Shown here: positions 15,094 to 20,789 of the stretch, piece by piece
How the letters are laid out: each line of letters starts with the position of its first letter
Position numbering within the stretch: position 1 is the first letter of the stretch
Program-made: the position numbers and the translations under genes
Assembly: GCA_009103225.1 (NCBI GenBank)
Contig: RHPI01001116.1
Location: 577,267-641,266 of the forward strand
Reading direction: 5' to 3'
DNA length: 64,000 bases
Source: Chlorokybus atmophyticus
Taxonomy: Eukaryota > Plantae > Mesostigma and Chlorokybus algae
Notes under the pieces: model-generated
Database searches by the model: none
What the model saw: only the letters and a program-made list of their open reading frames with translations
What the model was told of the DNA's origin: nothing

Positions 15094-17270
15094 AGCCCGG
15101 TGGTGTATATACTGGCTGGTGTCTGCGTCTCACGTGTGCTATGCATGTGACTTGCGCTGTTGGGTGCGATACACCTTGTGCATGCCGCTAGTTGTGCCTT
15201 AGACCTTCATCATACACTGTAGGCAACAACAACAATTACATGTTCCAGCACCGGGGTCAACACCACGGTGAATGTCTAGGTCAAGTCTGCAGTGCATACG
15301 GTATAATAGACACGCGAAGTGGAACAACATCGCGAGCAAATCACCTATGCCAGCAAAGGCACGACAATTTTAGCCAGGGGGCATAGCTTACAACCTCTCA
15401 ACCTTGCCTACATACAACCCACTACTTACGTGAATGCGAATGTATGCAAGTGCTGTGCACCCAGCCGCAGCAAAGAAGGAAGGAGCAAGCGCGTAACAAC
15501 CTGCAGCAGCCGAGGAGAAGAGAAAGGCTGTTAGTGAGTGTGGGCGTGCAGGGCGCTTGTGACAGGCGCAATGTGTGTGTAGCGTGCTGTGCGTGCGTGC
15601 TGGTGCAGCGCGACAACCCCCCGCGCCTACTGCCCCAACCTCACCGCCAAACTCTGCCACAACAACAACGACGAAGACACACTGCGCCAGTTAAAGTGTC
15701 GCAATGAGGGTTAGGTTAGTAGCCGTTTGTGCAAATTGCCCACGCACTCACAATGCTCACTCACTCACACACAATGCCATTGTCCATCACAGCATGCATA
15801 GACATGCATAGACATGCACAACAACAGCATGACAGAATGAGCACTACAGCACAACAGCATGAGCAAGCACGACCTGACTCTGCATGTGCGGGCACTATTG
15901 TGCTCCCCGCACCATGTCACAACAACTTACCTGCATGACCTGTTGTTGGTGAAGATGCCGTTTGTTGTGATCACCTCCGTGTAACACCCTCCCTCAACCC
16001 CCTGCAAACCAACCAGAACAAGTACAACCCAGAACACTCATACCAGTACTTATTACCCAGCACACGCTGCAGACGTGCAGTCAACTTTTGTTGGCTGCAA
16101 CCTGCAGCGAGTAGAGTGTCAATCAACATGACCAGCACGTGTACAAAGTGTGCTTTGTAGGTAGTGATACGCATGAAGCGATGTGCTTGAGACACCGCAA
16201 TGTTCAGCTTCGCTGACGTGGCCACATTTGATATCGGGTGTGGTGCTCGGTGTACATGGATGTCTACAAACACTGGCTGCGTGAGCTTGTTGTACACACA
16301 TGTACAAATACCAACATCCCTCGTGTGAAATCTGGTGAGGTCCAAGTATGGTACTGTGACGCCAGACGCTGTCCTGGCTTGTGCGAAGGATGCCTTGGGG
16401 TACAAACCCCAAGCCAATGCAACATCAGACATGTACATGAAAGACTCGAACTCAGGCACATCAACGACAACCAGATCATCCACATATCGCAGGATGGCAC
16501 GAGCATACCGCACCAATAAAGGCCTGTCCACCAATAGCTGCAGTCTGCGTAGTCAGCGTAGCTCGAACCCCAGCAAGTGAATGTTAGCCAAATAAACACC
16601 TGCATTGTTACCCTTGGGAATGCCCACACACTGTCTGTGGACCTTGTTGGTAGCAGTCTGCACATAGAGGTTATCAGAAACAATGCCAACAGATCATACA
16701 GCAATTGTGCTGTAGACACTTTGGTCCCCTCCGAGTATGGTGTGGGTCCTGGTAACCAATGAGCCGTGGTCTTGCCATTAGTGACCTTGATATGCAAAGA
16801 TGACCTCCTGTTAACATCTCGCTGGTACGCAATAACCTCATCCACCACAAAGCGTATTCATTCAGCAGCGAATCCGCATGCACAATGTTAGTGTACAAAG
16901 TGGCAAAGTCATACGTCTGCTTACCCAGGTGCTCACACTTCTGTCGTGCAGTGCGTGTGGTATTGAAGTGTTGTTGCAGCCTTGTGAAGCCAGCAGCATC
17001 GTGCAACACCTAGGACTGTGCAGCCCCTTCACCTGTCACCATGCTCCATAATATGTCAGTGGCAGGCATGCACGCTTTGTAAGCTCGAGACAACCACTTA
17101 GACACATCAGATAAGGTTGTGTCAAAAGCAGCTGCAATGAAACGCAGCTTGGGTGGTGCCTTGTGCATGCTTGACTGACAGGGTGCGGTAGATGTAGGGT
17201 AGGGGTAGGAGGTAGGTAGCACAGGTGTATAAAGATCTAAGACACTAGTGTGTGCTACAGCCCGGTGGTT
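15094..17270 (-). mobile_element. Penelope-like retroelement (5'-truncated, frameshifted RT)
   Basis: RT motifs across several frames: MHKAPPKLRFIA, TYDFATLYTNIVH, LRYVDDL, VPYLDLT, and thumb SQAHRFMRITTYKAHF...LLAAGC. Bounded by same-orientation CACCACCGGGCT motifs at 17259-17269 and 15094-15105. Confidence 0.88.
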
Positions 17271-17954
17271 GTGTATGTAGAGTTAAGATGACTTGCATGC
17301 ACCGTTGGTGCAAAGATGGTTGCATAACCTAAGCATTAGTCTTGCATATGCATGCGCAGTTGCAGTTTGCATTGTATGTACTAGCGTTGTGGCCTACTTA
17401 GCTCGCTACAATAACCATTAGCGCTACACACCAATGTGCATATGTATGTTTGTTGCATAATAAGCACTGCCGCACCCACACCCCGTTAATTATGCAAGCG
17501 CGTCGGTACAAGTCTAACTACCTGTGCAATAGTGCTCGGTGTCCACACTGGCACAACAGCAGTGTGCGCATATGAAGCAGTGTATGCATGAGCACGCATG
17601 TGTACAGGCATGCCAACAAGCAACGCAAGCGACCTGAACTGGGAGATGAGGCAGCGACGCTGCACAGCTGAGACAAGAGGCAGCAGCTCAATCCCAGTCT
17701 GAGCGCATCCCAGCACTGCTAATTCATCACGACTTGCAATAGTACACACACATTGACACCGACAACGCCCCTTGCAATAGCAAGCGAAGCATGGCACCCA
17801 TGCTGCAAACCCAAACAACTGCTTGTCGCTAGGTAACGCTGTTTGACAACACGCAGTCACCTGACCGCTGTACACTGCTGGTTCTCACTATGTTCTTGAC
17901 TAACATAAAGGAATAATAACTTTCACACTCAACTGCTGCACAAGCGGCTTGAAG

Positions 17955-18265
17955 TCATGTCTTCAACCGCGCATTCCTTGCATCATCTTTCATGTCTGCT
18001 GTCTCGGACGTCTTCTTCTTACCTGCAGTGAAGCAGCTTCAGTGATGACAAATCACACACCACAGGTGACTGAACATTTCCCTGGAATAGCATGAGTTGC
18101 ACACGCAATCCAACGTCTTTGCGTATGCAACTGGCATCACAGACCTGATGAGAACAACAGCGGTACTGCAGCGAGAGCGCAGAACCCAATGGTGCCCAAC
18201 AAGACGTGCCGCTTGTTCCCGCTCCACGCGAAGCGCTGGAAAGCGGTCGGCTGCTGAACAGCCAT
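17955..18265 (-). CDS. 62-aa single-pass membrane microprotein (2 coding exons: 18265-18145, 18022-17955)
   Basis: Spliced product MAVQQPTAFQRFAWSGNKRHVLLGTIGFCALAAVPLLFSSGKKKTSETADMKDDARNARLKT*. Canonical GT-AG phase-1 intron and one hydrophobic helix. An acceptor sits immediately before the ATG. Confidence 0.65.
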
Positions 18266-18429
18266 CTGCGCACACTTGCACAGAGGCAGGCAAATTTGAG
18301 GTCACACATCACATGGACATGCCAGCACAACTGTAACTTACGTTGAGAATCCATTGCTGTTGAACCATCAGCCACTAGCCAACCGAGGCAACTCCACATA
18401 CATACAACTAAGCACACCTTGAGGAGTAA

Positions 18430-18926
18430 TTATGACCGGTTGGACTGGGCGTAGTGCAGTATGTAAGGGGCGATGCGTACGCAGAGCAGGAAGCCTCCCA
18501 GCACCGCCAGATGGCCGCCAAGCTGCTTCAGCGCCTCCTTCTGAGGCGGCAAACCGCAGAACGTTAGTACATACATGCAGCCGTAAGTGAGAACCAAACC
18601 AACAACACACAACTCGACATGCAACAGCCTGCACACTGGAAACAAGTACATGCACGCAATGGAATGAACAGGTCGAGAGGCAAAGTACAGCACGGCGTCC
18701 TTGTTTGCTAAAACAGCCACGATGTAGGAAGATTATGGTGATATTAGAACAGTCAACAATGTGCTCTTGCAAACTATGCGCGGCCATGCAAGCAGCAGGG
18801 ATACCAAGCCAAAACCCTACAGCGGCGGAGGGAGGGTTCATACCTCCGACTGTTGCAACAGCGCATGCAACTGCATTTGAGAGCCCTGACCTGGTCCGGA
18901 CGCTTCGCTTTGCTCAGTTGAAACAT
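18430..18926 (-). CDS. TOM6: Mitochondrial import receptor subunit TOM6 (plant type), 2 exons (18926-18891, 18540-18430)
   Basis: Spliced MFQLSKAKRPDQKEALKQLGGHLAVLGGFLLCVRIAPYILHYAQSNRS* matches the plant TOM6 pattern (PDKAEALKQL..H...R.APY.L) as I recall it. Confidence 0.85.
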
Positions 18927-19176
18927 GTCCGCCGACGAGTTATCACCAACGCACGAGAGCCCGCCACGTCGTCGCCGCCGCCGCCTGCGTGTGGTCAAGG
19001 TACTTACACCTGTTCACTGATCCAAGTTGACGGCTCAGCATGTTGTTTGATCAGCGTCATCACGCAGACCGGTGTTCACTGATCCATGTTGCTCACAACA
19101 GATCACTGATTGCACTTGGCTGAACCAGCTTGGCCAGACGTAGAGTGGGTTCAGTGAACCACTTGTGGGCGTGTGC

Positions 19177-20789
19177 ATGGCGGAAAGGCGGAGGGGCGGA
19201 GAAGGAGGAAGCGGAGGAGGAGGGAGAGCAGGCAAGGGAGTGGAGCGAGCTGTGAGAGTCTACACCGTAGCTGACGAGTCCAGGTGAGCGGCAGCAGGGC
19301 TGGATGCTGCTTCAACGCCTCAGTACTCGACAAGTTGCTTGCTGTCTGACTCCTTTGTTGCATTGTGGTATAAGCTGCTCAAGTCAGTTGTTTTGAGACA
19401 GCAATGCACGCATGTCTGAGTTAGTACTACACGTACTTCTTATGTCCGTGCGTAACAACTTCAGCTTGAGCCCAACTCACCTTTTTTGAAAAGCATATGC
19501 TTAGCAGAAGTACCCCTCACCCAGACGTTGCAAGTTCGGTGACTGGTCACTGAGTTGTAAAAAAAGGTCTTTCTCGCTCTGTCTCCCTCCCCCCCTTGCG
19601 GCGACACTTGTTTGAGCAGGTACGTGATTGTGCGCAACGTGCCGGCGGTGCGGGTAATCGGCGAGCTGATAGCCGAGTTTGGAGCGTTTGGGGAAATACT
19701 CGAGTAAGGCGCCAGCCATGCGCAAGGAGTTTGCATGCTGGCTTTGTTCTTCGCAATGAGGCATAACTATTCCATATTGAGGTGGTGAACTGTCAGAACG
19801 TGTAGTCCTGTGCTCCTTTGCAGGTACAAGGAACTCACTGATGAGGCTCGTGAAGAGTTCACGCAAGTTGTGTGGATCAAGTATGCCAACATACAGAGCG
19901 CGCGGTGCGTTCTGTAAAGCGGCGGGTAGTCACTGCATGCATACAGACCTACACACCAACACACTCGTGTGTTATTATCACACTTGACTTGACTTTCTCA
20001 TCAGCTTTGCGAAGCGCAAGATGGACGAGTATTCGTTCTTCGGCGCGCATTTGGCCGTGTTGTACGCACCGCAATACGAGACCGTCGCAGAGACCGTTGA
20101 CAAGCTCGAGGAGCGGCGGCGCAAAGTCGGGGTGAAGTTGAGAGGTGAGGCGCGCGCACGGGGACAAATGTGGACTCGTGTGAACTCTTGTCTGTGTGCT
20201 GATTGCATAACTTGTCACAACAATAGAGCATGCGAGGGAGCTGAAGGGGCAGCGTATGAATGAAGGCGGTTCTGGTCGGGAGACGTCAATAGGGTGAGTG
20301 TTGGTAGTGGTGTGTGGTGAGCACGAGTCCAACGCGTGACCTGAAATAGCTGACAATGTGTTACGCAAGTGTAGGGGCAGTTCGCATGCAAGCGCTTCTT
20401 CCCATCGCGTACCCCCCGATACAACAAGCGGTCGCCCTCCCAATCATGAACTTCCACCCATTGAGGTGTGCATTGGTTGATACTTGCTTGCCCTGCATTC
20501 TTACACATTGTTTACATCAATTGACTGGACTTGCGCTTGATGCAGACCTTTCCCGCAACTGCAGCTTTGTCAATAAGAGACAAGCTCAGAAAGGTATGCG
20601 TGCTTAATCAATATACTTTTGAACGCTGTTGCCGCATGCATTGCATCTGCGCATCAACACAAGAGGCATTTGCATTGAGTGTGGGATGACACGCTGATGG
20701 CGTCTGGCAATCCTGTGCAGGGCTCGCACACAGCTGGCGTGCCTCCCGCAGGTGTTGTCCCCGAGTCAAAGCGGCATAAGCCTCGATGA
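19177..20789 (+). CDS. RBM48: RNA-binding protein 48 (minor-spliceosome factor)
   Basis: Exons give VRVYTVADESRYVIVRNVPA...FGAFGEILEY...VWIKYANIQSARFAKRKMDEYSFFGAHLAVLYAPQYETVAETVDKLEERR. The C-terminal exons (ending ...SKRHKPR* at 20787-20789) are less certain. Confidence 0.88.

Follow-up and report, generated by a model that had tools for sequence, protein, structure and literature searches.

We identified a locus on the minus strand of Chlorokybus atmophyticus contig RHPI01001116.1, within a stretch of 64,000 nucleotides (the window), that is probably a constitutively bicistronic nuclear gene, with one spliced mRNA carrying both a TOM6-like ORF (ORF1) and an ORF of 62 amino acids (ORF2). 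In contigs from two studies, two separate and non-overlapping ORFs were found on one mature spliced mRNA, whose order, read from the spliced contigs, is 5′ UTR (74 nt), ORF1, TAA, 12 nt, ORF2 and 3′ UTR. The first-pass annotation had attributed the DNA to a probable streptophyte alga, and Chlorokybus atmophyticus indeed belongs to Streptophyta, class Chlorokybophyceae.

Based on RNA-derived contigs from two independent studies, the transcript runs from 19000 to 17697 and contains three GT-AG introns; all features described below lie on the minus strand. The 5′ UTR (18927..19000, about 74 nt) contains no ATG, and the RNA 5′ end lies at approximately 19000. ORF1 consists of coding exon 1 (18891..18926), which holds 12 codons and the start context gacATGt, and coding exon 2 (18430..18540), which holds 36 codons, a hydrophobic tail-anchor segment and the TAA. 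Between them lies intron 1 (18541..18890, 350 nt, GT..AG), which is defined by the contig joints, with 18891|18540 present in both RNA runs. The TOM6-like ORF had been predicted with its ATG at 18926, exons 18926-18891 and 18540-18430, and TAA at 18432-18430, and both the sequence and the contigs agree with this structure. The spacer that separates the two ORFs in the mature mRNA (18418..18429, TTACTCCTCAAG) is 12 nt long according to the contig joints, and it places ORF1 and ORF2 in one frame and supplies the aag of the ORF2 start context. Intercistronic intron 2 (18266..18417, 152 nt, GTGTGC..GCGCAG) starts 12 nt past the ORF1 stop and ends exactly at the ORF2 ATG (acceptor AG at 18267-18266), and the corresponding joint, 18418|18265, was found in both X1 and X2, the two RNA runs described below. 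ORF2 coding exon 1 (18145..18265) contains the ATG, in the context aagATGg, and 40 codons plus 1 nt, encoding the N-terminal flank and the membrane helix; intron 3, located within ORF2 (18023..18144, 122 nt, GT..AG), is followed by ORF2 coding exon 2 (17955..18022), which encodes a charged 21-residue tail and ends with TGA. The 3′ UTR (17697..17954) is at least 258 nt long, with the X2 contig extending to 17697 and the X1 contig to 17767, and neither AATAAA nor TGTAA was found in it.

The first-pass annotation had placed a 76-nt intron between the two ORFs, opening at a donor (CAAC|GTAAGT) at 18341. The acceptor at 18266 proved to be the one used in the RNA, whereas the donor and the length did not hold, the RNA intron being 18417..18266 (152 nt) with its donor at 18417 (AAG|GTGTGC). 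The GTAAGT site (18341-18340) is present in the DNA, where it sits within the 152-nt intron 2, but is unused by the RNA. Similarly, the gap of 88 nt that had been assumed between the TOM6 stop and the donor is replaced by the 12-nt mature spacer, as given by the joint 18418|18265. For ORF2 itself, the predicted coordinates, the length of 62 amino acids and the single membrane segment are all borne out by the sequence, and the predicted intron within it is seen in the RNA contigs.

The RNA support consists of assembled contigs from runs presumed to be RNA, single long reads not being among the data, and the contigs were aligned to positions 17500-19600 at 90% likeness. Three runs matched, each containing approximately one-third of the sampled words, the share expected from exons alone. 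Two of them, X1 (2021, study P1) and X2 (2013, study P2), yielded one four-block contig each, of 634 and 668 nt, respectively. The blocks span 19000/18988-18891, 18540-18418, 18265-18143 and 18020 to 17767/17697 (X1/X2), and in both runs the joints were placed at 18891|18540, 18418|18265 and 18143|18020. The gaps between blocks measure 350, 152 and 122 nt and are bounded by CT..AC on the plus strand, which corresponds to GT..AG for a minus-strand gene. The third run, X3, contributed DNA-like pieces of low depth that are unspliced across exon-intron borders (17871-18056 and 18855-19063); since these pieces keep the introns, the spliced form represents RNA and not a retrocopy.

At the 5′ side, the X1 contig meets an Illumina adapter exactly at 19000, a fragment end that is probably also the RNA 5′ end, and the 5′ limit of the X2 contig is 18988. 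Transcription probably starts near 19000, about 180 bp from a divergent neighbour. One promoter with a start near 19000 would give rise to one pre-mRNA that contains both ORFs. It had been argued earlier that one mRNA probably serves both ORFs, since a TOM6 3′ UTR plus a second promoter would hardly fit between them, and the spliced contigs of the 2013 and 2021 studies bear this out. A scan of the spacer for Sigma-70 promoters and terminators found none, a result without bearing on a eukaryote.

Contigs give no proof of transcript ends, assembly drops rare isoforms, and a contig covering two genes is not in itself proof of a single transcript. On these grounds, two overlapping monocistronic RNAs might have been merged by the assembler, for example a TOM6 mRNA and an ORF2 mRNA that starts in TOM6 exon 2 and uses the donor at 18417. 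We consider such a merger very improbable. A separate TOM6 RNA needs a 3′ end, but the sole assembled continuation is the joint to the ORF2 ATG, 12 nt further on, and the 31-letter words over the joint 18418|18265 hold the TOM6 stop and the ORF2 ATG together. Moreover, X1 contains an unspliced intron 1 piece (18518-18677; depth 4.9 vs 2093 for the main contig) that looks like pre-mRNA, whereas no RNA contig lies inside 18266-18417, the interval in which a 3′ end of a TOM6-only RNA or a promoter for ORF2 would need to be located. Given that this rare intron 1 precursor was assembled and nothing was recovered from intron 2, no alternative TOM6 3′ end is represented among the assembled contigs. 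The result is also identical in two studies conducted eight years apart. In both studies, the only isoform assembled in abundance is the spliced one with the two ORFs, and the bicistronic mRNA appears to be the sole isoform.

The public gene model at this locus, Chrsp35S05294 (P0001; eukprot:jgi/Chlat1/5366/Chrsp35S05294), describes a protein of 94 amino acids that joins TOM6 residues 1-32 to the full ORF2, and its residues 33-94 are identical to the 62-aa ORF2 product. ORF2 had been described as unannotated; this is incorrect in that the whole ORF is contained in the public model, and correct in that it is hidden there behind the TOM6 fusion. The model needs a donor at 18480, provided by a GT within TOM6 exon 2 (18479..18480, TGC|GTACGC), and this donor is unused in the RNA contigs, which cover 18418-18540 unbroken. 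The public 94-aa model is a chimera of both ORFs resting on a donor that goes unused in the RNA, and its splice is apparently the invention of a predictor that permits a single ORF for each transcript. Proteome and orthology studies of small mitochondrial subunits should take note of such false fusions in public annotation.

A single fusion protein, be it the 94-aa chimera made via donor 18480 or a 115-aa product of readthrough at the TAA, is in our view extremely unlikely to be what this locus encodes. The public model is itself such a fusion, and the 12-nt spacer leaves the ORFs in one frame. Against this, the contigs use the donor at 18417 rather than that at 18480, and a shared frame arises by chance in one-third of cases, with no excess of shared frames among chlorophyte bicistrons. 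As for readthrough, a TAA with T after it is not known to be leaky.

ORF1 encodes, with good confidence from its sequence, a small tail-anchored TOM subunit, most likely TOM6. The product has 48 amino acids, and its C-terminal half contains one hydrophobic segment, at residues 11-27 of the part encoded by exon 2 (36 aa). This matches the build of plant-type TOM6, a tail-anchored protein of approximately 50-55 aa whose only hydrophobic segment likewise lies in the C-terminal half. It also appears to resemble Arabidopsis TOM6 strongly, with K/RPD..EALKQL followed by R.APY.L.Y. Database searches for ORF1 were run on single exons, and the word query for TOM6 exon 2 was extended to 40 aa by adding in-frame codons from the intron. 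Neither exon piece matched a Pfam family, no PDB match was obtained, and the word-index protein search was blank. In a search based on language-model features, the clusters nearest to ORF1 exon 2 were those of small, Tom5-type TOM subunits, with scores of 0.86-0.89, under the tool's line of 0.9.

ORF2 looks protein-coding, judging from its composition and architecture. Its 62-residue product has a basic N-terminal flank, a hydrophobic helix at residues 21-39 and a charged tail. The GC content at third codon positions is 0.75 and 0.62 in the two ORF2 exons and 0.81 in TOM6 exon 2, compared with 0.48-0.51 in the introns. Splicing is needed to complete the frame: if intron 3 is retained, ORF2 stops after two extra codons. 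X1 also contains a low-depth diverged copy, with 6 differences in 64 nt and the same exon junction as ORF2. Over 30 nt, this copy encodes KKK-SDTADLK where the present locus encodes KKKTSETADMK, the two differing by a 3-nt indel that keeps the frame, two conservative substitutions and one synonymous change. The 64-kb window does not contain this 30-nt variant of ORF2 exon 2, and the diverged copy may be a paralogue or represent carry-over of sister-species material.

How ORF2 could be reached by ribosomes is suggested by the distribution of start codons. Over the 233 nt that precede the ORF2 ATG in the mature RNA, a single ATG occurs, the TOM6 start, while the last exon contains 11. The body of ORF1 has no ATG in any frame, which is not significant alone (P = 0.15 by shuffling). 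The ORF1 start (gacATGt) has a purine at −3 and no G at +4; its context does not read as clearly weak, because of the purine at −3, and that of ORF2 (aagATGg) reads as strong. Under the mechanism that we propose, most scanning 43S complexes would initiate at the ORF1 AUG and a fraction would leak past it; the leaked complexes would meet no other AUG in any frame before that of ORF2 and would start there. Leaky scanning of this kind would fix the ratio between the two small proteins. We infer that both ORFs are translated from one mRNA, and the layout fits the leaky-scanning design of chlorophyte bicistronic mRNAs, for which leaky scanning has been shown in vivo (PMC11291117). Among algal bicistrons, the median 5′ UTR is 54-83 nt, the median ORF1 291-357 nt and the median spacer 40-183 nt, with depletion of ATGs before ORF2. 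The Chlorokybus mRNA likewise combines a short 5′ UTR (74 nt), a small ORF1 (147 nt) and a short spacer (12 nt).

The main rival to leaky scanning assumes the same bicistronic mRNA and differs in how ORF2 is translated, namely by termination and reinitiation, in which the 40S subunit stays on the RNA after ORF1 and restarts 12 nt on. ORF1 is short (48 codons), the spacer is just 12 nt, and very short spacers are reported to favour reinitiation (PMC11291117); the purine at −3 of the ORF1 start also means that leakage is perhaps modest. However, reinitiation efficiency drops with the length of the upstream ORF, for which 48 codons is long, and an AUG-free path from the cap to ORF2 is required by leaky scanning only. 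In the two chlorophytes tested, a stronger ORF1 context cut ORF2 output and one added AUG abolished it, and both outcomes speak against reinitiation in those algae (PMC11291117). We therefore regard reinitiation as rather unlikely here and retain leaky scanning as the preferred mechanism.

The same RNA may also be read as a TOM6 mRNA with a long, intron-bearing 3′ UTR, perhaps under the control of nonsense-mediated decay, in which ORF2 is non-functional. The TOM6 stop is followed by two exon junctions, so that ribosomes terminating there would meet features that provoke decay in plants. No search returned a significant homologue of ORF2, and in Arabidopsis, readthrough bicistronic RNAs are decay targets whose second ORFs are rarely translated (PMC9768141). 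On the other hand, the first AUG past ORF1 is the ORF2 start, in what reads as a strong context; third-position GC is raised as in ORF1, in a frame that is complete only after splicing; the diverged copy preserves that frame through its 3-nt indel; and the product would combine one clean membrane helix with a charged tail. The spliced form is, furthermore, the sole abundant assembled isoform in two studies, unlike a decay substrate. A non-functional ORF2 thus seems quite unlikely to us. The high contig depth suggests that the RNA escapes decay, perhaps, and this is speculation, through translation of ORF2, which would clear the exon junctions. Translation of both ORFs from the bicistronic mRNA remains the reading that we prefer.

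Chlorophyte algae provide well-documented examples of mature bicistronic nuclear mRNAs (PMC7896298, PMC11291117). In streptophytes such mRNAs are hardly documented, the cases given in the sources consulted being the conserved CDC26-TTM3 and the decay-prone readthrough RNAs of Arabidopsis. The nearest known system is the chlorophyte pair of TOM22 (TOM9-like) and SDHAF3 (Cre06.g278242/Cre06.g278345; PMC7896298, PMC11291117). In both systems, a nuclear mRNA with a short 5′ UTR carries a small ORF1 encoding a small tail-anchored TOM subunit, with the second ORF close behind; in the chlorophyte pair, the partner is a small mitochondria-linked protein. The two differ in that ORF1 here is TOM6-like and ORF2 encodes a 62-aa membrane protein rather than a soluble LYR-motif assembly factor. 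They further differ in lineage (Streptophyta vs Chlorophyta) and in that the spacer here is created by splicing. The searched supplements of Duenas et al. 2024 (PMC11291117) list no TOM6 or ATP synthase pair, and a full-text literature search returned no report of bicistronic nuclear mRNAs in Chlorokybus.

Among conserved bicistronic loci of streptophytes, the closest is CDC26-TTM3 of land plants and Chlamydomonas (cited in PMC11291117), which likewise yields a mature bicistronic mRNA whose ORF1 is small (approximately 65 aa). Its ORF1 can trigger nonsense-mediated decay, which translation of ORF2 counteracts; the proteins are unrelated to those considered here, and ORF2 there is a full-size enzyme. 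With regard to the spliced spacer, the closest counterparts are the intergenic-splicing readthrough transcripts of Arabidopsis (Kurihara et al. 2022, PMC9768141), in which an intergenic intron is likewise spliced out, the region of the first gene's poly(A) site is lost and a bicistronic RNA results. Those transcripts, however, are minor by-products beside monocistronic mRNAs, are subject to nonsense-mediated decay, and their second ORFs are rarely translated (PMC9768141). At the Chlorokybus locus, in contrast, the bicistronic form is the sole abundant assembled form, and ORF2 begins at the first downstream AUG. If our reading is right, the chlorophyte habit of placing two genes on one mRNA is also present in the branch of the green lineage that includes the land plants. 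A highly covered bicistronic mRNA in the earliest-branching streptophyte class suggests that the mechanism arose earlier and is more widespread than the chlorophyte data indicate.

The nature of the ORF2 product is more speculative. It could belong to the subunit k type (Atp19/DAPIT) of small ATP synthase subunits in the mitochondrial inner membrane, in which case the mRNA would couple two small mitochondrial membrane subunits, much as the chlorophyte TOM22-SDHAF3 mRNA does. More specifically, we tentatively raise the possibility, itself doubtful, that ORF2 is the Chlorokybus subunit k, perhaps the counterpart of the land-plant '6 kDa' protein, made only from the TOM6 mRNA by leaky scanning. 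If this were true, the exclusively bicistronic encoding of such small membrane subunits of mitochondria would be older than the chlorophyte-streptophyte split, and gene predictors assuming one ORF would have hidden a class of streptophyte microproteins in chimeric models. Should ORF2 be an ATP synthase subunit or another mitochondrial subunit, the locus would also offer a natural system for studying how one start codon, through its context, determines a fixed ratio of two organelle proteins.

Homology searches with ORF2 used P0001:33-94 as the query where the full length was searched and exon 1 alone otherwise; queries as short as ORF2 have low search power, and blanks carry little weight. Among 1.84 billion representatives, the sole real match to exon 1 was its own model, P0001 (100% identity). 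A repeat protein that was also matched by exon 1 shares only a GFCG motif and is unrelated. The word-index protein search was blank for exon 1 and returned only the own model for the whole of ORF2, and the search of exon 1 with language-model features gave no usable match. In Pfam, no family was found at E ≤ 10 except for a spurious sub-threshold match of the helix to an archaeal microprotein. The sole metagenome match (L001) comes from a bacterial contig, where an ORF of 53 aa lies next to a gene for a penicillin-binding protein; this ORF has only the 'LAAVPLLF' helix words in common with ORF2 and was set aside as a chance match. AlphaFold2 predicted ORF2, modelled alone, as a helix with disordered ends (pLDDT 62), and a single helix is not diagnostic.

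The best match of ORF2 among solved structures was subunit k of the yeast mitochondrial ATP synthase (6b2z chain k; E 0.056, 16.8 bits). The alignment pairs ORF2 residues 20-54 with chain residues 16-51, spans the ORF2 exon junction, and takes in both the helix (GT.G...L..VP..F) and the basic stretch that follows it (S.K.KT). ORF2 exon 1 alone gave nothing comparable among solved structures, and no other solved subunit k or DAPIT chain matched ORF2 at E ≤ 10. No match to subunit k or to a family model was significant (best E 0.056; no Pfam ATP19/DAPIT), and a control small membrane ORF reached an E value of 0.41, to an unrelated Fab. The subunit k match is marginal, and we treat it as a lead and not as a finding. 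The counterparts of subunit k are presumably DAPIT in animals and the '6 kDa' Fo subunit in land plants, with motifs similar to those of ORF2. The plant 6-kDa subunit (At3g46430/At5g59613) has been described as plant-specific, with its function undefined. The 62-aa ORF2 product, with its helix at residues 21-39, matches the build of subunit k (single-pass, approximately 58-68 aa, central helix). Yeast Atp19 (subunit k) is likewise similar in size (68 vs 62 aa), has one helix in the same position, and shares with ORF2 a basic stretch resembling Phe-x-Ser-x-Lys-x-Lys-Thr and an acidic patch past the helix.

The public Chlorokybus annotation carries a 94-aa gene model at this locus, Chrsp35S05294, which is a chimera of residues 1-32 of TOM6, the first cistron of the spliced mRNA, and the entire ORF2, the 62-aa single-helix membrane protein of the second. 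The underlying parts lie on the minus strand at positions 18430-18926 (TOM6) and 17955-18265 (ORF2) of the window, and their fusion requires a donor at 18480 that is unused in the RNA contigs. Further small bicistronic pairs may be hidden likewise in the same annotation. At 350, 152 and 122 nt, the three minus-strand introns (within 18023-18890) all have lengths equal to 2 modulo 3, with a GC content of ~0.5 compared with ~0.6 in the coding exons, a pattern that is probably coincidental.

A diverged copy of ORF2 was present at low depth (3.2) in record 2 of sequencing run X1, where it aligned to positions 18143-18206 with 6 differences in 64 nt. Its exon junction is identical to that of ORF2, and its tail carries an in-frame 3-nt deletion. 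This copy was absent from the window, and it is either a paralogue at another genomic location or carry-over from a sister species that was sequenced in the same study. The single match from the metagenome scan, a 53-aa membrane ORF adjoining a penicillin-binding-protein gene on a bacterial contig (L001, 2974-3135), was rejected as a relative of ORF2, the similarity being limited to the helix words 'LAAVPLLF'; the case illustrates how easily false relatives arise from short membrane helices.

Downstream of the bicistronic gene, at a distance of ~1 kb, two overlapping minus-strand ORFs of 187 and 194 aa (15971-16848), one of which contains the motif 'YVDDLVV' typical of reverse transcriptases, probably represent a decayed retroelement. 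On the other side, positions 19180-19285 look like the first exon of a neighbouring gene that is transcribed divergently, on the plus strand. A 1319-nt RNA contig has one end at 19180 and departs from the window at a CAG|GTGAGC donor close to 19284. Since the start of this neighbour lies only ~180 bp from that of the TOM6 mRNA (19000), the intervening sequence is suggested to be a shared bidirectional promoter region. A second sample labelled as this organism, X4, contains a piece 95-99% similar to the 19180-19285 region, with different flanks.
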